IMG/VR virus record: IMGVR_UViG_3300030102_006934
Location: 62,001-126,000 of that record
Strand: one strand, 5' to 3'
Length of the DNA: 64,000 bases
The translations under genes and the position numbers were made by a program. Below the pieces are notes generated by a model, which was not told the origin of the DNA, made no database searches, and worked only from the letters and a program-made list of their open reading frames with translations. Positions 4,846-62,211 of this stretch are shown in pieces. Every line of letters starts with the position of its first letter. Positions within the stretch are counted from its first letter, which is position 1.

Positions 4846-6312
4846 ATGAAAAGGTTAACATTTAAAAAACCATTCAACGGAATGGATAACGCTTTAAAAT
4901 TAATTCCAGAATCTTATAAGGTTGATGGACAAGAGTTTCAAATTACAGATGGAACCGAAACATATAATATAAGATGGGATATTAATGAGGCTACTGTACT
5001 AATAGCTGATAATAAAAATCTTATAAGTGAAGATGTAAAGAAAATGAAACATCTTATGAACTTTAAATCTCAAGATACTCTAGGAACACTTAAAGGTGAC
5101 GAAAGAATCAACGAGAACTCTTCATTTAACGATGTTTGGAGTAAGACAAAAGATTTATTAAATGAGTCTGAAGAAATAAATGAAATGACATCTGGTTCTG
5201 CGGGTGGATTAGGTTTCACTGGTGAAGGTAACTTAGAAGGTAATACACCAATTAAAGAGATGGAATCTGAAGAAAAAGAAGAAGAAAAAGAAGAAGAAAA
5301 AGAAACAGTTAAAATTTCTGACTCACAAATGGAAAAACTAAAAGATGAAGGCATATGTGATTGTGATGATAAATGCTTAATCAACACATCAGCAGATGTT
5401 GACTTTAAAGAAGTTTTAGAAAAAGCCGAAAAAATGGATAAAGAATGTATTATTGTCTCAAAAGAGAGAATGGACATGCTAGAAGAAAAAGGTGAATGTG
5501 GTTGTGGAAAAATTAAATTAAAATGTCACAAAGAAAGTGAAACCATTAACGAAATAACAAGAACAGAGTTTGAAAATAATGCTTCTCCTACCGATTTGAA
5601 AAGATATAAAAGGAATCCATATGAATTTGGACCTTTTGATGATGAAAAAAAGGATGAAAAAGCTATTGAAGAATTGACCCTACCAGATGCTGTTGATTTT
5701 GCAACTGGATTTCCAGTTGCCATGCTACCATTTATAGCTACCGCATTAGGTGTATCAGTTGCTGTGGCAAAACATCATTTAAAGAATGCTAAGTCAGGTA
5801 AAGAAGCTATGAAAGCCATATATGATATGAAAAATGATAAGGATGGTGATAATGACAATAATCCAAAAAATGAAGGTATTTACGAAGAAGCTCCTGGTGA
5901 AGAAGCTACAACACAAGTTAGTGTAGCTGATATAAGAAAAGACCTTAAAACTTTATTGTATAGCCTAAACAAAGCAGACTTTAAAGCAAAAGAGAGAAAA
6001 GTAGTCGACAGATTATTAGATATGATTAAACAACTTGGAGGAGAGGAAGATTCTTTCTCACCTAGATTATCATCTAAATTAGATTTAGTACAAAAAGCTA
6101 TTGATGATAAATCACAACCTAAAGATGCGACACCTGATTTAGCACAAGACGCTATGTCTGCTAATCAGAATGAAGAAAAAGATAGATTTGATGAAATCTT
6201 TGAAGATATGTATCAAGAAGAATTAAGTAAAAAACAATCTGAAGTTATGGATACCAACAATGATGGTAAAATTGACGCTGAGGATTTAGCTAACTTAAGA
6301 AATAAAAAATAA
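4846..6312 (+). CDS. acidic putative prohead core/scaffold protein with C-terminal EF-hand-like loop
   Basis: N-terminus paralogous to the end of the upstream gene; ends DTNNDGKIDAEDL. Confidence 0.5.
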   Translation: MKRLTFKKPFNGMDNALKLIPESYKVDGQEFQITDGTETYNIRWDINEATVLIADNKNLISEDVKKMKHLMNFKSQDTLGTLKGDERINENSSFNDVWSKTKDLLNESEEINEMTSGSAGGLGFTGEGNLEGNTPIKEMESEEKEEEKEEEKETVKISDSQMEKLKDEGICDCDDKCLINTSADVDFKEVLEKAEKMDKECIIVSKERMDMLEEKGECGCGKIKLKCHKESETINEITRTEFENNASPTDLKRYKRNPYEFGPFDDEKKDEKAIEELTLPDAVDFATGFPVAMLPFIATALGVSVAVAKHHLKNAKSGKEAMKAIYDMKNDKDGDNDNNPKNEGIYEEAPGEEATTQVSVADIRKDLKTLLYSLNKADFKAKERKVVDRLLDMIKQLGGEEDSFSPRLSSKLDLVQKAIDDKSQPKDATPDLAQDAMSANQNEEKDRFDEIFEDMYQEELSKKQSEVMDTNNDGKIDAEDLANLRNKK

Positions 6313-6336
6313 AATAGTTTAAAAGTTTATATAATA

Positions 6337-6364
6337 AAACCTCCGCATTAGTGGGGGTTTTTTT
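6337..6364 (+). terminator. intrinsic terminator
   Basis: AAACCTCCGC...GTGGGGGTTT hairpin + T run after a stop codon. Confidence 0.6.
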
Positions 6365-6399
6365 GTTTGGTATTATATTTATTAATAAAGAATACAGTT

Positions 6400-6933
6400 A
6401 TGGGTAAAGATATTAAAATATTAAATGAGGTTCATAAAATGAAGAACCTAATGAAATACATGGGAGGTGAGAAGTTATCCCCAAAGCAATTAAAAGAAAG
6501 TTATTACGAAGAATCGGAAATGCCACTAGAGGAAGGTGTTAGCGACAACTACTCAAGAGAAGTTAAACTAAGTGTTAGCACATACCAAGCAACTATTAAT
6601 GGTAATGAAATTGACTGGGTTGAAGCAAGTTCAGTAAAATTATCATACCTTATAGACATAGAAGCTAGAGAGTGGGGGATTAAAGGTATTAGTTTATACG
6701 CTATAGAAGGACCATCTGAGATTGAATTAGAGGTTTCTTATTACCCAGAAGGTAGTGATGACCCAGAACAAATGACAATAACAGTACCACTAAATTGGGA
6801 TAATGCCAATAAAGAAGAGGAAAGTGGTAATGAAGTTATAACAGTTGGTGAAGAAGTTGAACTACAACTATCTAATAATGATAAAGGTGAACTATTTGTT
6901 AGTGAAATAACAATTCCAGTTTATACCCTATAA
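6400..6933 (+). CDS. hypothetical putative virion protein (ILNEVHKMKNLM leader)
   Basis: ATG 6400 follows ATATTTAT at 6375. Confidence 0.55.
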   Translation: MGKDIKILNEVHKMKNLMKYMGGEKLSPKQLKESYYEESEMPLEEGVSDNYSREVKLSVSTYQATINGNEIDWVEASSVKLSYLIDIEAREWGIKGISLYAIEGPSEIELEVSYYPEGSDDPEQMTITVPLNWDNANKEEESGNEVITVGEEVELQLSNNDKGELFVSEITIPVYTL

Positions 6934-11889: not shown

Positions 11890-12330
11890 ATGAAATATTT
11901 CATAAGAAAGAGGTTATTAGAAGAGATTGGTCCAGGAGAACCAAGTAAGGCGGCTGGTGTATTAATTAAGTGTATTAAGACAAATAGAGTTTTACTATTA
12001 CTTAGAGCTGAAGGTACACATTCAAACAAGTGGGCTATGGTTAGTGGCGGTATAGATGAAGGTGAAGAAGTTTTAAGTGGCCTTAAAAGAGAGATAGGTG
12101 AAGAGATGCAAATAAACGCTGATAATCCAGACACTAAAATAGATTTTACTTTTAAGAAAAAAATTGTTAATACAATTAAAAATTCAGAGTTTTATTATTA
12201 CGAAGGATTTACTAATTCAGAATTTATACCTAAATTAGACCATGAGAACCATGATTACATTTGGTGTAGCAAAGAACAACTACCATCACCATTATATCCT
12301 GGCTTAAGCACTAAGATACAAAATATATGA
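11890..12330 (+). CDS. Nudix hydrolase with KYFIRKRLLEE leader
   Basis: Nudix box GGIDEGEEVLSGLKREIGEE. Confidence 0.85.
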   Translation: MKYFIRKRLLEEIGPGEPSKAAGVLIKCIKTNRVLLLLRAEGTHSNKWAMVSGGIDEGEEVLSGLKREIGEEMQINADNPDTKIDFTFKKKIVNTIKNSEFYYYEGFTNSEFIPKLDHENHDYIWCSKEQLPSPLYPGLSTKIQNI

Positions 12331-13428: not shown

Positions 13429-13493
13429 AAAAAAACTTGACAATTAAAATAATCGTATTATATTTGTTTCGAATTTAAACTATAACTATTATT

Positions 13494-14948
13494 ATGAGTA
13501 AATTAATTGATACTTTATTAACTAAAGATTCTCTAACAGAGAACGGTATGTCCACAAATTCTACAGCACTAAATTCATGCGTAGATTTATTTTTCAAAAT
13601 TGGTGCATTAAGAGGCGCTGAAAAAAACATAAAAATTAGTTCATTCACTAAAGCTTTTGGTGAAGACCCATTAACGGCCATGAAGATTCTTTTTTGGGCA
13701 AGAGACGTAAGGGGTGGTGCTGGAGAGCGAAAAACTTTTAGAGAGATATTAAGGTATTTAGTTAAAAACAAAACTGAAGTTGTTAAAAACAACATGGCTT
13801 TAATTCCTGAATACGGTAGATGGGACGACATGTTATATCTAATTGGAACTAAATTAGAGAAAGAAGCCCTAGGTGAAATCGCGTGTGCCTTAGAAGGTAA
13901 AAATGGTCTTTGCGCCAAGTGGATGCCTAGAGGCAACACTAAAAACAGGGAAAAGAAAAGATGGGCTTCGGTCATCAGAAAATATTTAGGATTAACTCCT
14001 AAATCTTACAGAAAATTATTATCTGAATTATCTAATACTGTTGAACAGTTAATGTGTTCTAAAAAATTCAAAGACATTAACTATTCTCACGTACCATCAA
14101 AGGCTATGTCTGATTATATGAGAGCTTTTGAAAGGAACGATAGTGAGGGTTTTAATAAATACTTAGATTCACTTAAAAATGGGGATACTAAAATTAACTC
14201 TGGGGCTATATACCCATATGATGTAACTAAGAACTTACAACATGGTTCTTCAGTAGGTGCAGTTGAGCAATGGAAATCATTACCAAACTATATGGAGGGT
14301 TCTAAAGAAAGAGTTTTACCAGTTGTTGATGTTTCTGGTTCTATGACTGTTCCAGCTGGTAATAACCCAAACCTATCTTGCTTAGATGTTTCGGTTTCTC
14401 TAGGTTTATATATTTCAGAAAGAAATGAAGGACCTTTTAAAGACGCCTTTTTTACTTTCTCAAATTCGCCACAGCTACAATATTTGAAGGGGGACCTTTC
14501 AGATAGGTTCACACAATTAAGTATGGCTGAATGGGGTGGGTCAACGAATATTGAAGCTACATTTAAAACTCTTTTAGATGTATCGGTAAATAACAATGTT
14601 AGTGCTGAAGAAATGCCTACAATGATATTAATACTCTCAGATATGGAATTCAATCAAGCCACCAGTATGGGTTGGAGCCAAGCTGAATCAGGCTGGAACC
14701 CAACGGTACAAGAAATGATTGAAAAAATGTATGATAATGCTGGTTACAAAATGCCAAAGATTGTATATTGGAACATTCAATCAAGACGGGACAATGTGCC
14801 AGTTAAATTTGATAAACAAGGTACCGCATTAGTTAGTGGGTTTAGCCCCGCATTACTAACCGCTTTATTATCTGGAAATGAAATCACACCATACAGTATT
14901 ATGAGTGATGTTATTAATTCAGAAAGATATGATAAAATAAAAATATAA
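13494..14948 (+). CDS. TROVE-like/vWA domain protein (DUF2828 family, Ro60-related)
   Basis: TENG, ARDVRGGAGER, YGRWDD, AKWMPR motifs; MIDAS DVSGS; ILSDMEF; YWN. Confidence 0.8.
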   Translation: MSKLIDTLLTKDSLTENGMSTNSTALNSCVDLFFKIGALRGAEKNIKISSFTKAFGEDPLTAMKILFWARDVRGGAGERKTFREILRYLVKNKTEVVKNNMALIPEYGRWDDMLYLIGTKLEKEALGEIACALEGKNGLCAKWMPRGNTKNREKKRWASVIRKYLGLTPKSYRKLLSELSNTVEQLMCSKKFKDINYSHVPSKAMSDYMRAFERNDSEGFNKYLDSLKNGDTKINSGAIYPYDVTKNLQHGSSVGAVEQWKSLPNYMEGSKERVLPVVDVSGSMTVPAGNNPNLSCLDVSVSLGLYISERNEGPFKDAFFTFSNSPQLQYLKGDLSDRFTQLSMAEWGGSTNIEATFKTLLDVSVNNNVSAEEMPTMILILSDMEFNQATSMGWSQAESGWNPTVQEMIEKMYDNAGYKMPKIVYWNIQSRRDNVPVKFDKQGTALVSGFSPALLTALLSGNEITPYSIMSDVINSERYDKIKI

Positions 14949-14950
14949 TT

Positions 14951-15088
14951 TAAAGAATGCATTCAGCAAACTCTTACTTAAACACAAATAGAGAAGAGAG
15001 GTTTAGTTGTTTCCTAGGTTTTTAAAACCACGATAAAAAAAATGACACCTTCACTACTGGGCTAGAAGTAAAAGCCCAAGCATTCTGA
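14951..15088 (+). ncRNA. putative structured RNA, TAAAGA-N4-TTCAGC family, copy 1
   Basis: AGAATGC (14954) pairs with GCATTCT (15080); internal hairpins; followed by terminator. Confidence 0.55.
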
Positions 15089-15094
15089 TTTATT

Positions 15095-15131
15095 AAGGGG
15101 ATTTGTAATTTTTTTTACAAATCCCTTTTTT
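15095..15131 (+). terminator. intrinsic terminator
   Basis: GGGATTTGTAA...TTACAAATCCC + T run. Confidence 0.75.
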
Positions 15132-15193
15132 AATATTTACACTTTCAGAAAAAATAAGTATCTTTAAAATATAAAAAAAAATAAACATTTGAT

Positions 15194-15427
15194 ATGAAAA
15201 TTTTAATAAAATATATTAAAGAAGACCACTCGGAGTCAATAGTTTATCTGGTTGACCACAACGACAACCCAATCAAGGCAGATATCGTAAATAAAGATGA
15301 ACAAAAGATATTAGTAAACGAATTACTATCCGAATATTTTACACCAGAAGATTGGGTAAATAATAAAAAAGATTTAACATCAAACGTGAGTGAGATAACT
15401 TATGATGAATATTTAAATCAAGAATGA
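15194..15427 (+). CDS. hypothetical protein
   Basis: ORF. Confidence 0.55.
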   Translation: MKILIKYIKEDHSESIVYLVDHNDNPIKADIVNKDEQKILVNELLSEYFTPEDWVNNKKDLTSNVSEITYDEYLNQE

Positions 15428-15813
15428 ACTTTATAACACAACACCCGATTAAAAAATCAGACTTAGGTTTTCATGGTAACCTATTTGGCGGTAAGTTACT
15501 AGCCTGGTTAGATGCAGCCGCAGCATCATTTGCTTGTGAGTTTTGTGACACACCAAGAATGGTTACTAAATCTATAGATAAATGCGTATTTAATAGACCA
15601 GCCAGAGAAGGCCAACTATTAAAAATATATGGTAAAGTTGAAAAGATAGGTACAACTAGTGTAGATTTAAAACTTGAAGCTAGAAGTCATAATGTTTACA
15701 ATGGTAAACAAAACATTATATTAGGGACAAATATAACTTTTGTTAGGGTTGATGAACAGGGAGATGCAATACCTATATCAGAAAGAGTTAAGAATAAAAT
15801 TAAAAAAAAGTAA
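15424..15813 (+). CDS. acyl-CoA thioesterase (hotdog fold, YciA-like)
   Basis: DLGFHGNLFGGKLLAWLD...VGTTS-like segment...ITFVRVD. Confidence 0.85.
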   Translation: MNFITQHPIKKSDLGFHGNLFGGKLLAWLDAAAASFACEFCDTPRMVTKSIDKCVFNRPAREGQLLKIYGKVEKIGTTSVDLKLEARSHNVYNGKQNIILGTNITFVRVDEQGDAIPISERVKNKIKKK

Positions 15814-15816
15814 ATT

Positions 15817-16137
15817 ATGGAAAAAGGATACCCACTATTAATTGTTTTTTATTTGGATAGAGAAATGATGACTAATCCAGATATTGTACAACCGTTTGCC
15901 AATTCGGTTAATGACGCATTAGCTCAAAGGGAAGCAAATGCAATGGCTTTCTTTCTACCAACTGATGGTGAGGAAAGAATTGAATGTATAAACCCAATAC
16001 AGGTTACTAAAACAAATATGAAGAAAATAAATAAATTAGTTGAAGACCTCACAAATAACTTTGACATCGGAAAGGGTGCGGACAAAGGCAAGAGCGACCC
16101 ATCTAATGATATTGAAATTAAAAATGATGGAAAGTAA
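15817..16137 (+). CDS. hypothetical protein
   Basis: ORF. Confidence 0.55.
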   Translation: MEKGYPLLIVFYLDREMMTNPDIVQPFANSVNDALAQREANAMAFFLPTDGEERIECINPIQVTKTNMKKINKLVEDLTNNFDIGKGADKGKSDPSNDIEIKNDGK

Positions 16138-16294
16138 TAGTAGAGAGTGCGAATTACTATCGTTACTGTATAGGTCTGAAGAACTGTTATTGGAAATAAT
16201 GGACGGATGTAAAGACAATCAGGATTATATGTACCTATCTATAATAATAAAAAATTTGGAAGACAAAATAAGTCAGCAACAAGATTTGATATGA
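16124..16294 (+). CDS. small hypothetical protein
   Basis: Downstream ATG of ORF 16040..16294. Confidence 0.4.
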   Translation: MMESNSRECELLSLLYRSEELLLEIMDGCKDNQDYMYLSIIIKNLEDKISQQQDLI

Positions 16295-16400
16295 TAAATA
16301 AAAATAAATTAACAACACAGTTTTCAAAGAAAGATACGGTTAAAAGGCTTATCAAACAACGTAGATTAAGTTTTAATAAATTAAAATTAAGGGGTTAATA

Positions 16401-17069
16401 TTAAGGTCTAGTGGATGTTCTTCTAATTTTAAGTATGTCCCAGCCAGTATTCTCTTTTATTATATCATACATTTTACCAGTCATAACTTTACTAGCTGTA
16501 CCCATAAAAACCAAGCCATTTATTTTAGCTTTGGTTACTGATTTATTCAATTCATGATGTAATCTTTGAGCATCTTTTTTACACTTACAAATAACCATAT
16601 CAAACTGTTTTTCATTATAAATAATTAATTTATTATGAACTACAATTATCTGTTTTGAATGATTAATTTCGGTTATATTTTTAAATAAACTATTTATTAT
16701 TTCATGTATTGTTACTCTATCGTTTTTGGGGTCCCTACCATATAACCAAAACGTTTCTTCTAATTCATAATGCTGGTCATCTATTACAGTCCATATACCA
16801 AAAAGAGGTTTTTCGCTATAAGTCCTACCCATAGAATCCCTTCTAGTTCTAAATTTATCCCCATCTTCAGTATCTTTAACTATGTATAGTCTATACTTAA
16901 CTGGCTTTATACCATCATAATTTATAAATTTCTTGGGGAACATAACAGATTTATTATCATCAATAATTTTGTGATAATTAATGAAAGAAGCTTCAATAGT
17001 TTTACATCTGTGTAGGGTCATTTTATAATCCCCGTTTTTTGTAAGTATTACCCTGTACATATTCAACAA
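16401..17069 (-). CDS. hypothetical protein
   Basis: 222 aa ORF with TAnnTTTG upstream. Confidence 0.65.
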   Translation of the reverse strand: MLNMYRVILTKNGDYKMTLHRCKTIEASFINYHKIIDDNKSVMFPKKFINYDGIKPVKYRLYIVKDTEDGDKFRTRRDSMGRTYSEKPLFGIWTVIDDQHYELEETFWLYGRDPKNDRVTIHEIINSLFKNITEINHSKQIIVVHNKLIIYNEKQFDMVICKCKKDAQRLHHELNKSVTKAKINGLVFMGTASKVMTGKMYDIIKENTGWDILKIRRTSTRP

Positions 17070-17099
17070 ATTTACTTATATTAATACAAAAATAAATAG

Positions 17100-18155
17100 A
17101 TGCCCAAAAAAGATTACTATAAAATACTAGGTGTTAACAGAGATTCTGATGCCAAAACAATTAAAAAGGCATATAGAAAGTTATCTAAAAAATACCATCC
17201 AGATGTAAATCCAGATAACAAAGAAGCTGAGGAAAAATTTAAAGACGTTGCTTCAGCATATGAGGTCCTTTCTGATAAAACTAAAAAGAGTAATTATGAT
17301 ACCTTTGGTGATGAGAATGGGCGACCCAATAACTCATTTAATGATACAAACATGTCTGATATATTTAGTCAGTTTGGTTTTGGTGGGAGAGCAAATCCAT
17401 TTACAAGACAAAGACAAACTAGGGGTAATGATTTGGCTTTAAATATAAAAATAAGTCTTGAGGATGTTCATAACGGACTGACTAAAAAATTCAAATATAG
17501 GAGGAACGCAAAGTGTGAACCATGTGACGGTGAAGGTGGAACAGAAAAATCAACTTGTCCAAATTGTAATGGTACTGGGTATCAAACATTCCAACAAAAA
17601 ACCCCAATGGGTATTATGAGACAAATGGTTGATTGTAGTACGTGCGAATCAACTGGTGAGGTAAATAAAAAAATGTGTAACTCATGTTCTGGAAATGGAG
17701 TTAAAAATAAAGAAGAATATATAGAGGTTAAAATACCAAAAGGTGTTACAGATAATGATATTATATCATATAATGGTATGGGTCATTCTATAAAGGGTGG
17801 TTCTTCGGGTAGACTAATAGTTAAATTATTAATCACAAAAAATGAGCACTTTACTAGAAATGGTGATGATTTAAAATATAATTTAAAATTAAAATACCCA
17901 CAATTGGTTTTAGGTGATAAGGTAGAAATACCAACAATAGACGGAACTAAAATAAGAGTTAAAATACCAAAGTTAAGTAATATTGGTGATAACTTAAGAA
18001 TCGTTGGTAAAGGATTAAATAGCAAAAAGGGTGATAATGTAGTTGGTGACATGTTAATAAATTTAGATATTGAAATGCCTAAAAAACTAGAAGAAGGTGA
18101 AGAAGAACTAATAGATAAATTAAAAATAATTAATGAAAGAGTTGCTAAAGAATAA
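17100..18155 (+). CDS. dnaJ: molecular chaperone DnaJ
   Basis: J domain with HPD, G/F region, four CxxCxGxG-type repeats, C-terminal domain. Confidence 0.95.
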
Positions 18156-18189
18156 AATGAATGATATATTTGATGGAAATATTAACTAT

Positions 18190-18402
18190 ATGAGTGAAAA
18201 TTCAGGTAAAGGTGGGGGATTAGGTTTAAGCACTATGGTGTTTATAGTATTCCTAATACTTAAATTATGTAAAGTAGGTATGGTTGCCAACTGGTCATGG
18301 TTGTGGGTAACATCCCCATTATGGATACCAATAATTGTTATGTTTGGTATAATAGTTATGGTACTGATACTTAGCTTTATAGTTAAAATTTTTGATTATT
18401 AA
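18190..18402 (+). CDS. small membrane protein (LKL...WSWxWVTSPLWI family)
   Basis: Paralog of 30933..31145. Confidence 0.65.
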   Translation: MSENSGKGGGLGLSTMVFIVFLILKLCKVGMVANWSWLWVTSPLWIPIIVMFGIIVMVLILSFIVKIFDY

Positions 18403-18433
18403 ATAATATTATATTAACAATTAAATTAAATTT

Positions 18434-18853
18434 ATGGCAAAGTACGAAGAACCATTTAAAGACACACAAGAAATTTTTGATGAAGTGATTAGAAATTCAG
18501 GCTTGGACAGGTATATCAACATTAAATTATTGGTAGATAATAAGCAAAAGAAAAAAGTTGCAAAACCATATAAGTCACCAAACTTATTAAAACATGAAAC
18601 AAAAAATGATGTTTACATTATAATAAATGAATTGATTTTTGAACAACTAGAAACCTGGCAAAAATTAATGGTCGCTGAGGAAGCTATAGCTGGAATTAGT
18701 TTTGATACGGAAAAGGATAAACTAGAAATAAAAACTGGTGACATCTCAACTTTTTCAGGGCTATTAAAGAAGTATGGCTATGAAAGGTACGAAGTAGTTG
18801 AAGAGTCTGTCAAGACACTATATAATGTCGAAAGAGAAACAGCAGAGGTGTAA
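18434..18853 (+). CDS. hypothetical protein (possibly degenerate phage metallopeptidase-like)
   Basis: ORF; no intact HExxH. Confidence 0.45.
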   Translation: MAKYEEPFKDTQEIFDEVIRNSGLDRYINIKLLVDNKQKKKVAKPYKSPNLLKHETKNDVYIIINELIFEQLETWQKLMVAEEAIAGISFDTEKDKLEIKTGDISTFSGLLKKYGYERYEVVEESVKTLYNVERETAEV

Positions 18854-19107
18854 TGACTAGAGAAGAAATTGCAGAATATAATGAAGAGGCGCTAATATGT
18901 GATGGCTTTGATGAAGCCATCATTGGTGTCGCTGAGAGAATAAATTTAGGTCCAGTAGCCGCATATAGCGTTGAAAAAATAATAGAAATACTAATGGAAA
19001 GAGACGGTATGACATATGAAGATGCTCACGAGCACTTTTCTTATAATATTATTGGGTCATGGATGGGCGAATACACACCCGTCTTTATTTACACAAATGA
19101 AGAATAA
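18853..19107 (+). CDS. conserved phage hypothetical protein
   Basis: DGFDEAIIG...YS..KII..LM..DGMT.E.A.E.F.YNI.G.WMGE.TP motif common in phages. Confidence 0.7.
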   Translation: MTREEIAEYNEEALICDGFDEAIIGVAERINLGPVAAYSVEKIIEILMERDGMTYEDAHEHFSYNIIGSWMGEYTPVFIYTNEE

Positions 19108-19109
19108 AT

Positions 19110-19331
19110 ATGAAAGAACAATTGTACAAATTATTAAGTAGTAAGGCATTATCAGAAAAAGAAGAAGCCTTAACCACATTGAAATTATTATCAGAATATC
19201 CAGCTGGTATTGGTGACCACTCTACTGGTGACTTTTATAATAATGCTGAAGAGGCTCTACAAAAATTAGTTGATGCTGATGATAAGTTAGAAACACTAGA
19301 TAAATATAAAGATATTTTATTTAAAATTTAA
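19110..19331 (+). CDS. conserved phage hypothetical protein
   Basis: PAGIGDHS motif. Confidence 0.6.
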   Translation: MKEQLYKLLSSKALSEKEEALTTLKLLSEYPAGIGDHSTGDFYNNAEEALQKLVDADDKLETLDKYKDILFKI

Positions 19332-19335
19332 GATT

Positions 19336-20034
19336 ATGTTAGACTTTTATAGTGAATTTAAAAAATATGCTAAATTACATATGGGTGTTGATGAAATGAA
19401 ATTTCGTGACTGGGAGAACCTACAATCAAATATGTATAATAATGTTCAAGTGGGTGGGTCATTAACACCTTACATATTGGAAGAAAGGGAAATGAGAGTA
19501 ACTCAGATGGACATCTTTTCAAGACTAATGATGGATAGAATATTATGGGTGGCTGGCCCAGTAAACGACCAAATGAGCACTGTACTTCAAGCTCAATTAA
19601 TGTTTTTAGATAACGTTGAGGAAAGAGACATTACGATGCATGTCGACTCACCAGGGGGGTCAGTTAAATCTGGATTAAGCATGGTAGATGTTATGAATTA
19701 TGTTAAATCAGATATTGTAACCATAAATACTGGTATGGCGGCCTCCATGGGCTCAATATTGCTTGGTAACGGAACTAAAGGTAAAAGATTTTCACTGCCA
19801 AACTCAAAAGTTATGCTACACCAAGTTTCCGCTGGGGCACAAGGCCATGTTGAAGACATGAAAATTAGTATTGCGGAGGCTGACAAATATAATGATAAAC
19901 TATTTGGCATGTTAGCTAGTTTTTGTGGTAAAACAAAGAAAAGAGTATTAGCTGATTGCAATAGAGATAATTGGCTTGATGCGAAAGAAGCTTTAGACTA
20001 TGGCATCATTGATGGTATAGTTGAAAATAAATAA
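19336..20034 (+). CDS. clpP: ATP-dependent Clp protease proteolytic subunit
   Basis: DIFSRLMMDRI, DSPGGSV, GMAASMG (catalytic Ser), MLHQ, RDNW. Confidence 0.95.
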   Translation: MLDFYSEFKKYAKLHMGVDEMKFRDWENLQSNMYNNVQVGGSLTPYILEEREMRVTQMDIFSRLMMDRILWVAGPVNDQMSTVLQAQLMFLDNVEERDITMHVDSPGGSVKSGLSMVDVMNYVKSDIVTINTGMAASMGSILLGNGTKGKRFSLPNSKVMLHQVSAGAQGHVEDMKISIAEADKYNDKLFGMLASFCGKTKKRVLADCNRDNWLDAKEALDYGIIDGIVENK

Positions 20035-20036
20035 AG

Positions 20037-20507
20037 TAAAATCGGGTTGTTACTAATAACAAATGAATATAAAATTAAATTAATATGGAAACAATAATTT
20101 TAGTAACAGTCTTATCAACACTAGGTGTAGTTGCAATGCTTACGGCAATTGTGGTTATGGCTTTTAAGTTGAGAAATAAGGTTGATGTTAATAGTTTCGA
20201 AGAAGAAGTAAAAACTATTTATAATGAATCAAATATAAGATTCTCTGAATTAGAATCAAGACTCGATGATGAAATTCAACACATACATCGAGAACTTAAT
20301 AATAATGTTGAAGAAGCGCATAGGCGTATAAATAATGAAAGTGAAGAAATTAGGAGACTAATTGATTCAAGGCTTGATAAATTAGACTCTAAATTTGTTG
20401 GCGGTATTAACCAATTACAGAATGAGTTAAACTTTAATCTAGCTAAAAATAAAATGGGTGAGGATATACTCACACCTATAGACTAATAAAACAACAACCC
20501 GATTTTA
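20037..20507. repeat. perfect 15-bp inverted repeat bracketing one gene
   Basis: TAAAATCGGGTTGTT (20037-20051) / AACAACCCGATTTTA (20493-20507). Confidence 0.85.
20085..20486 (+). CDS. TM-anchored coiled-coil protein
   Basis: N-terminal TM; IDSRLDKL motif. Confidence 0.65.
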   Translation: METIILVTVLSTLGVVAMLTAIVVMAFKLRNKVDVNSFEEEVKTIYNESNIRFSELESRLDDEIQHIHRELNNNVEEAHRRINNESEEIRRLIDSRLDKLDSKFVGGINQLQNELNFNLAKNKMGEDILTPID

Positions 20508-20618
20508 AATGAGGACCTCGAAAGATTTCCTCATTTTTTTTTTAACCACTTGACTTTAAGATAAAAGTTTATTATATTTGTGAATATTTAAAAACAAAAG
20601 ATACGTTCTTTAACATAT

Positions 20619-20990
20619 GGGGCAAAATGGTTATTGATTATTTATAGTCGTGATTAGTAAGCATGCAGTGTTAGATTGGAAACACTTTAATTACCTATCA
20701 TTTTTCTTAGATGGAAACGAGTTTGACATCGATGAAAACTTCCTAGATACCGCTTCAGTAGAAGTTGGTACGGGAGAGGTTGCATTCGCCTAAGAGTAAT
20801 GATGATGGTGGTAATCCACCAACCCTCTTTGATAGTAGAGTTTAAAAAATTATCCAGAAGATTAGTTATCAGTAAAACGAACTGTAATAAGGGAACTGTT
20901 AAACTTTGCTGGGATTAGAAACCAGATAAGCATGTAGAAAACTCTTTATGAGTAAGTAAGACTAGAGTTCGAATCTCTATTGCTCCACTA
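20619..20990 (+). ncRNA. ssrA: tmRNA; probable tag (A)GNEFDIDENFLDTASVEVGTGEVAFA
   Basis: Acceptor stem GGGGCAA/TTGCTCC-A with G3.U wobble; T-arm TAGAG-TTCGAAT-CTCTA; internal frame 20713-20793 ending AFA-stop; TATATTTG promoter at 20573; CCA not encoded. Confidence 0.88.
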
Positions 20991-21080
20991 ATACTCCTTT
21001 ATTTTTATATCAAGGGGTTTACTAAAAAAATATATTACTTATATTTATAAAAGAATAAAAAAAATAAAAAAAATTTTATT

Positions 21081-21530
21081 ATGTCAGTTATTACAGAAAA
21101 CAGTACAGTGATGGTCCATTACACTGGTAAATTAAACGATGGATTTGTGTTTGATTCATCAAAAGCCGTTGAAGGTGATGATAGGTTTGTAGATAGAGAA
21201 CCATTAAAAGTTGAGTTGGGTAAAGGGTTAGTTATACCTGGATTTGAAAAGGGTTTAATCGGAATGAAAGCTGGTGAAACTAAAACCGTTGCCATACCAA
21301 CAAAAGAAGCTTACGGTGAAAAAAGAGAAGACATGCTTCAAGAAATACCTAAAGAAAACGCCCCAAAAGATGTTAAAGTGGGTGCTGGATTACAAGCGGA
21401 TGGCCCAAACGGAAAAATGGTTGTTGTTGTATCTGAGGTTAAAGAAAAAACAGTTGTTATTGATGCAAATCACCCACTAGCTGGAAAAGATTTGAATTTT
21501 GAATTAGAGGTAGTTTCTATCGAGAAATAG
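21081..21530 (+). CDS. FKBP-type peptidyl-prolyl isomerase (SlyD/SlpA-like)
   Basis: HYTGKL.DG.VFDSS, IPGFEKGL.GM, EAYG, DANHPLAGKDLNF. Confidence 0.92.
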   Translation: MSVITENSTVMVHYTGKLNDGFVFDSSKAVEGDDRFVDREPLKVELGKGLVIPGFEKGLIGMKAGETKTVAIPTKEAYGEKREDMLQEIPKENAPKDVKVGAGLQADGPNGKMVVVVSEVKEKTVVIDANHPLAGKDLNFELEVVSIEK

Positions 21531-21556
21531 ATATATTAAATAACATTTAAGACATT

Positions 21557-21583
21557 AAAAAGCCCACAGTTGTGGGCTTTTTT
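21557..21583 (+). terminator. intrinsic terminator
   Basis: AAAAGCCCAC-AGTT-GTGGGCTTTT. Confidence 0.75.
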
Positions 21584-21618
21584 ATTATAAATATATATTT
21601 ATTATAAAAATAAACACT

Positions 21619-21846
21619 ATGAAAGAATTTATAAAAGATATATTTACCGAAGACAAAAATGAAGGTAAATATTCATCAAAAAAAACAGTTGGAATAATTG
21701 CTGCTATTTTAGGTTTTATTGGATTTATTGTTGACGGGTTTCACTTTTACGAAATTAGCGAAACTATGTTTGATTCAATATTAATTTTTTCGGGTACTAT
21801 GTTAGGTGCCTCACTTGTTAAAAGTTTTAGTAAAAGCAGTAAATAA
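21619..21846 (+). CDS. two-TM small membrane protein, holin candidate
   Basis: SSKK motif then two TM helices, basic tail, late motif upstream. Confidence 0.45.
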   Translation: MKEFIKDIFTEDKNEGKYSSKKTVGIIAAILGFIGFIVDGFHFYEISETMFDSILIFSGTMLGASLVKSFSKSSK

Positions 21847-22102
21847 AAAACGAATGGGGCTCAATAAGCCCCATAGTTTTATTTATTAACGTTATTATTA
21901 TTATTATTATTATTGGTATTATTAGCGTTGTTACTATTTGTTGGCTTAGGTCTATTAGCTTTGTTTTTTTTACATCCACATCCCATGATAATATAAATTT
22001 ATATCTATTGTTATACATTAATAAATATAAGATTAAGATAAAAAAAATAAAGGTAAAATGTTTATTTATGTTATTTTTTTTATATATTAGTTTAAAACAA
22101 TC

Positions 22103-22345
22103 ATGCTTTTTAAGAAATACGTAATAACAATAATTGACGAGAAATGGAATATTGTCAAAACAAAATTTAAGGTAAAGGTTATACCAAGAATTCACGAGCT
22201 ATTTTATTTGGAAGAAAACGGTAAATACTATAGAGTTGTCAATGTAATACACAATATAAAAAAAACACATGAGCTATGCGTTGTTATAGAGGAGTATATT
22301 GATGATTATAAACTAAAAGATAATAAAGAAATTATTAAAAGTTAA
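22103..22345 (+). CDS. hypothetical protein
   Basis: ORF. Confidence 0.55.
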   Translation: MLFKKYVITIIDEKWNIVKTKFKVKVIPRIHELFYLEENGKYYRVVNVIHNIKKTHELCVVIEEYIDDYKLKDNKEIIKS

Positions 22346-22348
22346 TTT

Positions 22349-22585
22349 ATGAAAAAATTATTGATTAAATTTTGTCAGTTTTTAACTAAAAACATGTTAA
22401 TTCGCATTTTTATTTTATCAATTATAACACTTATTTCAGCAATAATTGCTAATTTTTATGAACCAGCCGAAAAGATTATGTTGGTGTGCATACTATTACT
22501 AACAATAATAGCTATAATTTTTATAATTTACGCCTGGATTATAAACCCGATAAGAAGACTAATCGATAAAAAAAATAAAAAATAA
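22349..22585 (+). CDS. small membrane protein
   Basis: Two TM segments. Confidence 0.55.
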   Translation: MKKLLIKFCQFLTKNMLIRIFILSIITLISAIIANFYEPAEKIMLVCILLLTIIAIIFIIYAWIINPIRRLIDKKNKK

Positions 22586-22643
22586 TTGCTTTAGACTACA
22601 AAAATAATTATATTTGTATATATTTGTATAAATAAACGGTAGT

Positions 22644-22703
22644 TAAAGATTAGTTTCAGCCAGTTTTAAGACAAGTTATAGTTATAGTTAAAAACTAATC
22701 TGA
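22644..22703 (+). ncRNA. putative structured RNA, TAAAGA-N4-TTCAGC family, copy 2
   Basis: AGATTAGTTT pairs with AAACTAATCT-GA; TATATTTG promoter just upstream. Confidence 0.5.
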
Positions 22704-22708
22704 CGTTA

Positions 22709-22769
22709 TAAAGAAAGGTTTCAGCAAATAAGCTTTAAATATATGATTAATTTAAAAACGCCTTTCTGA
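22709..22769 (+). ncRNA. putative structured RNA, TAAAGA-N4-TTCAGC family, copy 3
   Basis: AGAAAGG pairs with CCTTTCT-GA. Confidence 0.5.
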
Positions 22770-22947
22770 TAAAACAACTACAATTTTTCATAGTTTTAAG
22801 AACCAAAGTAGTGTTTTAAGTTGGTTCACAATTTTATCGTTATTTTTAAATTAAGTCCTTACCAACCAGGTGAGGATTTTTTTTATTCTTTATTCTTGTA
22901 TTATATTTTATATTTTTATATATTTGTTATCAAATAATTGATTTATT

Positions 22948-23472
22948 ATGATTAAAACTCCATCAAAACTACCAAAACTACTTATAATTGGAAACGCGAG
23001 ACACGGAAAAGACACCCTGGCAGAAATACTTAGGGATGAGTTTGACCTAACATTCGAATCATCATCAAAATCAGCTTCAGACATATTCATATATGATTTA
23101 TTTAAAGAAAAGTATAGTTATAAAACACCCGAAGACTGCTACCAAGACAGAATTAATAGAAGACAAGAGTGGTATGAAGCAATATGTGAATATAACAAAT
23201 ATGATAAAGCCAGACTAGCTAAAGGAATATTATCTAGAACTGGTTGTTATGTTGGAATGAGAGACAGAGAAGAGATAAAAGAATGTATCAACCAAGGACT
23301 GTTCGATTTAATTATCTGGGTTGACGCCAGTGATAGATTACCCGAAGAACCAGCAACATCATTTAATATAGATAAAGGGTGCGCTGATATTATAATTGAA
23401 AATAATGAAACTTATGAAGACTTTCACACCAAGGTCTTAAGGTTAGGTAAAACTTTAATAAATGAAAAATAA
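22948..23472 (+). CDS. P-loop kinase, deoxynucleoside monophosphate kinase-like
   Basis: IIGNARHGKDT, YVGMR..EE, ADIIIENN. Confidence 0.65.
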   Translation: MIKTPSKLPKLLIIGNARHGKDTLAEILRDEFDLTFESSSKSASDIFIYDLFKEKYSYKTPEDCYQDRINRRQEWYEAICEYNKYDKARLAKGILSRTGCYVGMRDREEIKECINQGLFDLIIWVDASDRLPEEPATSFNIDKGCADIIIENNETYEDFHTKVLRLGKTLINEK

Positions 23473-27556: not shown

Positions 27557-27775
27557 ATGATTAAAGAAGAAAAACATACAATAGATTTAGAATATTTTAA
27601 AAAATATGTTGAAACTTATGATTATAGTGAATTTGAATATAATGAAACATTTATAAAAGATATGATTTATGGTATTGGTTTAGCCGTTAACGGTGATAAG
27701 TTCAAAATGGCTGATGGGTATAAAAGATTTGAAGATTTCTTATTAAATGAAATTATAAAACAAAAACAAAGATGA
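27557..27775 (+). CDS. cassette ORF, hypothetical (ends KQKQR in junction repeat)
   Basis: ORF ends in repeat TGA. Confidence 0.65.
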   Translation: MIKEEKHTIDLEYFKKYVETYDYSEFEYNETFIKDMIYGIGLAVNGDKFKMADGYKRFEDFLLNEIIKQKQR

Positions 27776-27924
27776 AAATATTTTTAAGTTTAATGATAAT
27801 GCTTTGTATGGGAATGACCTTATACCATTTCATCTCTCAACCAGAAGAGACAAACGAACTTATATTATGGTCAATGTTAACCCTATTTAATAGTCAATCT
27901 TTAATTAATATAAACCAAAACTGA
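27772..27924 (+). CDS. cassette ORF, 50 aa hydrophobic peptide
   Basis: MKIFLSLMIMLCMG...ININQN; runs repeat to repeat. Confidence 0.55.
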   Translation: MKIFLSLMIMLCMGMTLYHFISQPEETNELILWSMLTLFNSQSLININQN

Positions 27925-61851: not shown

Positions 61852-62211
61852 GTGATGAGTAGAATGAATAAAAAAATAAACAAAGAACCTTTACTATCTG
61901 AGAAAAAAATAGATAAAATTATAAAGAAGTATCTATTAGAGAGGGAAGAAGTAAATGATGACTATAGTGAAGAGTTAGAAGATTTTAGTGAAGATACTAA
62001 AGAAGTTTTTAGTGGTATGATAGAAGGTTTGGGAGAAGTTTTGGTAGATTTAGACTTTATAAAAAATAAAGAAGGTGATGTAAAAATCTATAAAAAATAT
62101 AATAAACATCTATATGCCGATAATCATTTAAATACTTTAATTAACAAATTAGAAGATGTTATCAATGAATTAAGTTTCTTAGTAGAGGGTGAAGATACTG
62201 AAGATGTTTAA
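61852..62211 (+). CDS. acidic hypothetical protein with IDKIIKKYLLE motif
   Basis: ORF. Confidence 0.55.
   Translation: MMSRMNKKINKEPLLSEKKIDKIIKKYLLEREEVNDDYSEELEDFSEDTKEVFSGMIEGLGEVLVDLDFIKNKEGDVKIYKKYNKHLYADNHLNTLINKLEDVINELSFLVEGEDTEDV

Follow-up and report, generated by a model that had tools for sequence, protein, structure and literature searches.

Ro60/Y-RNA particles are known from animals, some bacteria and a few phages with a TROVE-annotated gene. The known Ro-binding motifs are GGUCCGA, GNCGAA and CGAA, and the Y RNAs of metazoans are made by RNA polymerase III. In bacteria, YrlA genes adjoin rsr on the same strand and are defined by GNCGAAN0-1G near the 5' end, and the Rsr/YrlA/PNPase assembly serves as a precedent for a ring-protein ribonucleoprotein, or RNP (PMC4201824). 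The Ro60 protein of Thermus phage phiLo was shown experimentally to bind two adjacent Yrl RNAs and host PNPase (PMC12135203). Here we describe a comparable arrangement in a stretch of 64,000 nt (hereafter the window), positions 62,001 to 126,000 of IMG/VR record IMGVR_UViG_3300030102_006934, a 380-kb contig from a marine jumbo phage. A gene for a DUF2828/DUF7788 protein, referred to below as the Ro60-like gene, is accompanied by three small RNA elements, one long (copy 1) and two short (copies 2 and 3; Table 1). These RNAs belong to a large RNA family found beside a DUF2828-type gene in hundreds of phages. On the strength of genomic linkage, the family is probably the RNA partner of the DUF2828/DUF7788 protein. 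The system resembles Ro60 and its Y RNAs, and by sequence both partners fall outside the respective family definitions.

The three elements have one design in common. After the 5' strand of a 7-bp closing helix (P1) come three variable bases and a near-invariant CAGCAA; a variable insert follows, then an A-rich strand, the return strand of P1 and a G. Copy 1 reads TAAAGA-ATGC-A-TTCAGCAA ... GCAT-TCTGA and begins 3 nt past the stop of the Ro60-like gene; copy 2 reads TAAAGA-TTAG-T-TTCAGCCA ... CTAA-TCTGA, and copy 3 TAAAGA-AAGG-T-TTCAGCAA ... CCTT-TCTGA. The corresponding P1 helices are AGAAUGC/GCAUUCU, AGAUUAG/CUAAUCU and AGAAAGG/CCUUUCU, separated on the 5' side from CAGCAA (CAGCCA in copy 2) by 3 nt and trailed on the 3' side by GA. 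The 5' motif AAAGA-N5-TTCAGC has exactly three matches in the 64 kb. With one mismatch allowed it has six against 1.1 expected, a number reached by none of 100 shuffles. An earlier note on this DNA had singled out the elements as candidate Y-RNA analogues with compensatory changes in four paired positions (N4/N4') near their ends. Their positions and motifs were recovered when the sequence was re-read, and the pairs proved to belong to a real covarying family, with a helix that is actually 7 bp long (AGA+N4 with N4'+TCT). The described layout was likewise recovered: a terminator-like hairpin follows copy 1, the tandem copies 2 and 3 stand behind their own probable promoter, in the form of two TATATTTG boxes, and ahead of a terminator, and the interiors differ, with a small hairpin in copies 2 and 3 and hairpins plus a pseudoknot in copy 1. 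The first terminator-like hairpin would end the transcription unit of the gene and copy 1, and the second that of the tandem RNAs. Between copy 3 and the second terminator (22770-22852) lies an extra hairpin, GAACCAA...UUGGUUC (approximately 22800-22828), without CAGCAA, which could be a further small RNA domain on the tandem-RNA transcript.

Flanking sequences of 78 related viral loci showed the same RNA design beside the gene, built on stems that differ greatly in sequence; the RNA lies downstream of the gene in close relatives and upstream in distant ones. A loose 6-bp descriptor returned mostly chance matches and missed copy 2, and was replaced by 7-bp descriptors and then by covariance models. 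With a strict descriptor, 130 of 164 loci gave copies, 314 of them on the gene strand and 29 on the opposite strand. Covariance model R1 was built from 13 short copies with the 7-bp helix as the only structure, and model R2 from 46 R1 matches, including window copies 2 and 3 and the ortholog of copy 1 at viral locus L002. Applied to the 78 viral loci (531 kb, both strands, E <= 1), R1 produced 100 matches, 100/100 on the gene strand and nearly all near the gene; the majority lie no more than some 0.5 kb downstream or 2 kb upstream of it. Applied to 80 bacterial and archaeal loci that had not been used in building it (E <= 0.1), R2 produced 132 matches, again all on the gene strand (132/132). 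At least one match was present in 59 of these 80 loci, mostly as arrays upstream of the gene, with up to about ten different copies per locus. Overall, the RNA stands beside the DUF2828 gene in most of the 165 loci examined. The earlier note had set co-occurrence with DUF2828 genes as a refutation test and had proposed a covariance-model scan; the scan found the family in viral, bacterial and archaeal loci, with 232 of 232 model matches on the gene strand and nearly all near the gene. A locus whose protein is 55% identical to that of the window (L037) retains one long and two short RNAs, all directly after the gene.

In the window itself, R2 with filters off and both strands searched finds copies 1-3 alone (34.0, 36.9 and 41.4 bits; E 1.5e-6 to 6.6e-5, with 6.6e-5 for copy 1), and these scores are not independent of the model because copies 2 and 3 and the L002 ortholog of copy 1 are part of its alignment; the next-best match has E = 3.2. 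R1 assigns 44.7 bits to copy 2 and 42.5 bits to copy 3. It misses copy 1 under default filters because of the 110-nt insert, and R2 without filters recovers it. Rfam 15 holds no family for the CAGCAA RNA. Searched at gathering thresholds over the whole window and at E <= 10 over both RNA loci, Rfam returned a transfer-messenger RNA (tmRNA) as the sole relevant match; this search, also suggested by the earlier note, left the RNA elements unmatched at E <= 10. BLASTN against GenBank phages found no close relatives of the gene/copy-1 locus or of the tandem-RNA locus. Neither the CAGCAA RNA nor any RNA partner of DUF2828 proteins is described in the searchable literature, coverage of which is incomplete, and an earlier description is possible.

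Covariation in P1 extends over the whole family. In 46 viral copies, 98.8% of the P1 cells are paired and 118 cells show double changes, against 31.5 in shuffles. In 85 copies drawn from 48 genome_contigs loci unused in R2 and from four cultured-phage loci (found with R1 and outside the R2 alignment), 99.7% of the cells are paired, with 186 double-change cells against 39.7 in shuffles. When the partner columns were slid by 1-3 positions, pairing dropped to 32-48%; the alignments were fitted to the model, which favours structure, and the effect size and the strand bias are independent of this fitting. MAFFT alignments A3 and A6 split the 3' stem, and A4 and A7 were used instead. Orthologs of copy 1 that follow the gene in L002-L012 and L074 also show compensatory P1 changes. 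Conservation outside the helix is concentrated in unpaired positions: CAGCAA is conserved at 96-100% across the family, 87% of copies have an A immediately before it, the 3' strand of P1 is preceded by an A-rich run, and a G directly follows P1 in 85 of 85 copies. These conserved unpaired positions point to a candidate protein-recognition module. The ends TAAAGA and TCTGA, which the earlier note took as the mark of the family, are present in all three window copies, and the full strings are not conserved beyond them.

Several other interpretations of the terminal region were rejected. The 3' CUGA was considered as the D box of a C/D-box or k-turn element and as a hammerhead core; it lacks a C box and a GAAA partner, and across the family its conservation is limited to the G that follows P1. 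An alternative UCAG/CUGA pairing competes with the covarying P1, and its 3' half is unconserved across the family. Sharing of the outer half of P1 is 27% within genomes against 7% between genomes, and that of the inner half 21% against 9%. A genome-specific recognition code in the outer half was not adopted, since recent duplication explains the sharing equally well.

The protein encoded next to copy 1 is predicted to consist of a HEAT-repeat ring fused to a vWA domain with a MIDAS (metal-ion-dependent adhesion site), like Ro60. Its AlphaFold2 model, built with 35 homologues, has a predicted local distance difference test score (pLDDT) of 89.2 and a predicted template modelling score (pTM) of 0.88. 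In a Foldseek search of PDB, the ten top-ranked matches are without exception Ro60/TROVE chains, and the alignments span the full length (518-575 columns), with template modelling (TM) scores of 0.53-0.61 and E of 5e-9 to 1e-5. They include the best structural matches, phiLo Ro60 (9KOP/9L5Y), together with Xenopus Ro60 (1YVP, 1YVR, 2I91) and human Ro60 (9NEP and related entries); matches ranked below the top ten cover the vWA domain alone, at E of about 0.01. A profile search of PDB sequences also ranked TROVE/Ro60 first, weakly (E 0.016-0.08), aligning the MIDAS DxSxS residues of the window protein with the DVSGSM motif of TROVE chains. The MIDAS residues D279, S281, S283, T351 and D383 are invariant in the 35 homologues. 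The description of the gene as TROVE/Ro60-like in the earlier note thus holds by fold and by MIDAS; it fails in Pfam, where TROVE (PF05731) is unmatched even at E <= 10 and DUF7788, DUF2828 and a weak VWA_CoxE are the only matches. NCBIfam and a phmmer search against PDB sequences returned nothing for the window protein. A full-length structural match to Ro60 without a TROVE sequence match indicates a Ro60 fold in a separate sequence family. The match to PHROG 850 has an E of 2.9e-149. At least 711 GenBank phage records contain this DUF2828/DUF7788 family, as do 487 or more assemblies from bacteria or archaea; it is annotated as 'Ro-like RNA binding protein' in mycobacteriophages, 'RNA-binding protein' in RefSeq and 'hypothetical' elsewhere.

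Comparison with bacterial Rsr and YrlA/YrlB (RF02553) reveals a shared architecture in both gene order and RNA form. In either system the RNAs are encoded on the strand of the ring-protein gene and no more than a few kb from it, several copies per locus are usual, a stem of the 5' and 3' ends closes a large loop holding a short conserved motif, and in many genomes at least one copy carries a permuted T arm, an acceptor-like hairpin and a D arm. The protein here belongs to DUF2828/DUF7788 and not to Pfam TROVE, and CAGCAA stands 3 nt past a 7-bp helix, whereas GNCGAAN0-1G of YrlA lies in a bulged helix. The RNAs here are mostly minimal forms of 50-70 nt, and the long form in the window has a pseudoknot in place of the tRNA-like body. 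Rfam YrlA (RF02553) does not match the window copies at E <= 10. The placement used to recognise YrlA, within about 4 kb of a Ro60-type gene and on its strand, is also seen here for the model matches and for copy 1; window copies 2 and 3 lie 7.7 kb away on the same strand. P1 covariation agrees with the broad notion of a Y RNA as a terminal 5'/3' stem closing a large loop. The phiLo system (9KOP, 9L5Y; PMC12135203) likewise combines a phage-encoded Ro60-fold protein with small RNAs beside its gene, Yrl1 and Yrl2, each with a 5'-3' stem around a loop with a short motif. Its Ro60 is a TROVE-family protein and its RNAs contain CGAA, and binding and PNPase assembly are experimental results there. 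Metazoan Ro60 and Y RNAs (RF00019) share the vWA ring protein and the small RNAs with a binding site in the terminal stem, but show no sequence or model similarity and have a bulged GGUCCGA helix. Since the window RNAs fall outside Y RNA and YrlA as defined by sequence and by model, 'analogue' is the fitting word. The proposal that they are Y-RNA analogues gains from the relatives that carry a permuted tRNA-like module typical of YrlA.

The insert between the conserved strands varies widely. Most copies measure 50-70 nt, with a single small hairpin inside. A T-loop motif occurs in 39 of the 92 copies that reach 90 nt or more; these 39 come from 30 loci. The folds of L055 2576-2693 and of 27779-27909 in Escherichia coli phage Bas63 place P1 around a T arm, a 7-bp acceptor-like hairpin and a D arm, and Rfam YrlA scores long tRNA-like relatives at 24-34 bits, below its gathering score of 69. 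The tRNA-like domain (T arm, acceptor-like stem and D arm) is absent from the three window copies. Copy 1 and its close orthologs end in an H-type pseudoknot (15049-15077 in the window), in which CUUC/GAAG is interleaved with GGGC/GCCC. In six orthologs 94% of the pseudoknot cells are paired and four of nine pairs are changed on both sides, with 29-52% pairing in slid controls; further compensatory variants were recognised by eye in L012 and L018. L055 also contains, at 2699-2792, a tRNA-like gene (Rfam tRNA 24.9 bits) with an odd insert in place of the anticodon arm, consisting of GGUCUU-gcuu-AAGACC followed by UGAA-CGGCAA and an A run. Judged by its sequence, this gene reads as a circular permutation of the P1 + CNGCAA module inside a tRNA scaffold, and suggests that the tRNA scaffold and the P1 module are exchangeable units.

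Unannotated RNA copies also stand beside the gene in several cultured phages. Listeria phage P100 has three upstream of its DUF2828 gene gp165, and Campylobacter phage NCTC12673 has two. Bacillus phage Tsamsa has three copies: one lies within a gap of the upstream tRNA array, and the other two fall between that array and the gene. In E. coli Felixounavirus REP10, two copies found by R1 and a third found by R2 occupy gaps of the tRNA array. Mycobacteriophage LeBron shows weak matches only, and Vibrio phage nt-1 has no RNA copy within 2.5 kb of the gene. In P100 (L080), an RtcB-type 'tRNA splicing ligase', gp160 (5280-6506), is encoded 1.3 kb downstream of gp165; this layout echoes the rsr-yrlBA-rtcBA linkage known in Salmonella.

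Among phages with a member of the family, the E. coli Felixounavirus Bas63 offers a functional result. Its gp130, with DUF2828 and DUF7788, is 40% identical to the window protein; it is reported to be Ro60-like by structure and to counter the Ppl defence (PhageMaP preprint, PMC11482910). The authors of that study guessed that some tRNA genes neighbouring gp130 might be Y RNAs and did not identify an RNA partner (PMC11482910). We find four R2 matches in unannotated gaps of the Bas63 tRNA array (L165; 27070-27141, 27237-27299, 27692-27764 and 27779-27909), of which one is a tRNA-like long form. The minus-strand small coding sequences bas63_0137 and bas63_0138 overlap two of these predicted plus-strand RNA copies (27692-27909 of MZ501086) and are probably mis-annotations.

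Expression was surveyed in marine metatranscriptome runs. One RNA run contains a 172-nt contig over 14945-15116 at depth 14, another a 278-nt contig over 14824-15098, and nothing of the gene body (13494-14823) appears in any RNA run. For the tandem RNAs, 40-80% of the words sampled from 22590-22900 are present in each of four RNA runs, one of which has nothing of the gene region. This confinement of coverage to the RNA elements argues for stable small transcripts, in line with the discrete transcripts expected in the earlier note; the contigs are unstranded and span the RNA loci, with the gene body left uncovered. Copy 1 has the appearance of a stable 3' fragment derived from the Ro60-like gene's own transcript. 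The TATATTTG motif occurs 21 times in the window against 10.5 expected, and one box each stands ahead of the Ro60-like gene (13459), the tmRNA (20573) and the gene at 22948 (box at 22919), with two ahead of the tandem RNAs (22609, 22619). It is probably a promoter element of the source phage, and we infer that it is a Bacteroidota-type -7 box.

Fold, linkage, architecture and precedent make a Ro60-type RNP the best-supported reading of these observations. We estimate the probability that the phage makes such a particle, with the three RNAs as partners of the protein, at roughly 0.7; binding and downstream function are the inferred parts of this reading. The DUF2828/DUF7788 ring protein would bind the shared module, composed of P1, the single-stranded CAGCAA next to it, the A-rich strand opposite and the G directly beyond the helix. 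The variable insert would serve as the effector end: copies 2 and 3 hold a small hairpin there, copy 1 combines hairpins with an H-type pseudoknot, and many relatives have a permuted tRNA-like body. If Rsr/YrlA/PNPase and phiLo Ro60/Yrl/PNPase are a guide, the insert might recruit or gate host RNA-handling enzymes, or might mimic tRNA. The particle could then reshape RNA decay or quality control, or blunt host defence, during infection. Copy 1 would be transcribed with the gene and accumulate as a stable 3' piece, and copies 2 and 3 would be expressed from their own promoter with their own terminator. A role in RNA or translation quality control or in counter-defence is less certain, and is suggested by the neighbouring genes: DnaJ, ClpP, tmRNA and FKBP in the window, tRNA arrays and the RtcB-type ligase of P100 elsewhere. 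A broader proposal, towards which we also lean, is that these particles form a second, unrecognised lineage of Ro/Y-type RNPs with a code of its own (P1 + CAGCAA + G) and exchangeable effectors (hairpin, pseudoknot, tRNA mimic and the circularly permuted form in a tRNA scaffold), and that the RNAs are the missing cofactors of gp130, whose anti-defence activity has been validated by experiment.

Several observations weigh against a Ro60-type particle. The similarity of the protein to Ro60/TROVE chains is moderate (root-mean-square deviation 6.5-8 Å), and CAGCAA differs from every known Ro-binding motif. Window copies 2 and 3 lie 7.7 kb from the gene, and in 21 of the 80 genome loci, as in nt-1, no copy shows up within 2.5 kb. 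What the RNA libraries offer are assembled contigs without strand information, and such libraries may include DNA. Finally, gp130 alone, supplied from a plasmid or from T7, counters Ppl (PMC11482910). Because T7 is rescued on Ppl hosts by gp130 alone, at least this activity of the protein does without the phage RNAs.

The action of gp130 without the RNAs is also what might be expected if these were free-standing companions of tRNA arrays that the DUF2828 protein does not bind, serving as tRNA mimics, anticodon-nuclease decoys or RNase processing elements and linked to the gene through shared expression timing in an 'RNA island'. The copies in tRNA-array gaps of Felixounaviruses, the three Tsamsa copies in and next to such an array, and the many long forms with T and D arms are in keeping with this explanation. 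We regard it as unlikely: the window carries the RNAs and yet contains no tRNA gene in 64 kb according to ARAGORN, the matches follow the DUF2828 gene and its strand in tRNA-free loci as well (L052, L056 and many genome loci), and the sole part common to all copies, P1 + CAGCAA + G, is not tRNA-like. The position of most bacterial and distant viral copies directly upstream of the gene on the same strand, and of copy 1 inside the 3' untranslated region of the gene, could instead reflect cis-acting leader or 3' operators that let the protein, or some other factor, regulate expression from the DUF2828 gene.

Such control is difficult to reconcile with up to about ten different copies per locus, with copies 2 and 3 at 7.7 kb behind promoter-like boxes and a terminator of their own, with copies inside tRNA arrays downstream of the gene, with the tRNA-like modules of some copies, and with RNA contigs that cover the element and not the coding region; we hold it to be quite improbable. 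Tandem arrays upstream of a protein gene, sometimes with a terminator in between, are also reminiscent of the ToxIN layout, and the elements might be a type III toxin-antitoxin style RNA repeat array, or DNA-level repeats such as recombination sites or mobile-element ends. To either possibility we give very little credence. The elements are not sequence repeats, as their stems vary by compensatory changes around an invariant unpaired hexamer; the G-U pairs and the complete strand bias of the model matches point to RNA, and the fold of the protein is that of Ro60 and not of an endoribonuclease toxin.

If the Ro60-type particle proposed here is real, the set of Ro60/Y-RNA-type particles is much larger than the set with TROVE annotation. 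The protein family, currently labelled DUF or 'RNA-binding protein' in such well-studied phages as the Felix O1-like phages, Listeria P100, Campylobacter Fletcherviruses, Tsamsa and cluster L mycobacteriophages, gains candidate RNA partners with a precise, mutable recognition module. This makes the function of gp130 against Ppl testable at the RNA level in E. coli. For annotators, the covariance model provides access to hundreds of unannotated phage RNA genes, some of them overlaid by spurious small open reading frames. The range of the gene-RNA pair may also extend further: two genome_contigs loci from metagenome-assembled genomes binned as Promethearchaeota (Asgard; L110) and Woesearchaeota (L161) contain the gene with upstream RNA copies, which would place the pair in archaea, in their viruses or in mis-binned phage contigs.

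Table 1. Coordinates of the RNA elements, the Ro60-like gene and neighbouring features, numbered from the first nucleotide of the window
Feature	Position	Strand	Details
Ro60-like protein gene	13494..14948	+	484 aa; Pfam DUF2828 + DUF7788; phrog_850 'RNA-binding protein'; TAA stop 14946-14948
TATATTTG promoter-like box	13459..13466	+	28 nt upstream of the Ro60-like gene
Long Y-like RNA, copy 1	14951..15088	+	P1 14954-14960 with 15080-15086; CAGCAA 14964-14969; G 15087; pseudoknot 15049-15077
Terminator-like hairpin and T run after copy 1	15095..15128	+	14-bp stem; 1 site vs 0.1 expected
Two TATATTTG promoter-like boxes before the tandem RNAs	22609..22626	+	
Short Y-like RNA, copy 2	22644..22703	+	P1 22647-22653 with 22695-22701; CAGCCA 22657-22662
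Short Y-like RNA, copy 3	22709..22769	+	P1 22712-22718 with 22761-22767; CAGCAA 22722-22727
Terminator-like hairpin after the tandem RNAs	22853..22879	+	11-bp stem; 1 site vs 0.0 expected
NUDIX hydrolase	11890-12330		about 1.2 kb upstream of the Ro60-like gene
4HBT-type thioesterase	15424-15813		about 0.5 kb downstream of the Ro60-like gene
DnaJ, full-length	17100-18155		
Phage metallopeptidase	18434-18853		
ClpP	19336-20034		
tmRNA	20619-20990		tag ends ...GEVAFA; TATATTTG box at 20573
FKBP-type isomerase	21081-21530		

Two neighbours of the Ro60-like gene, encoding the NUDIX hydrolase and the 4HBT-type thioesterase, have no evident connection to the RNP. Farther downstream, the region 17100-21530 forms a cluster of protein- and translation-quality-control genes in a jumbo phage. 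It is noteworthy that one phage encodes a tmRNA together with ClpP, the protease degrading tagged proteins.

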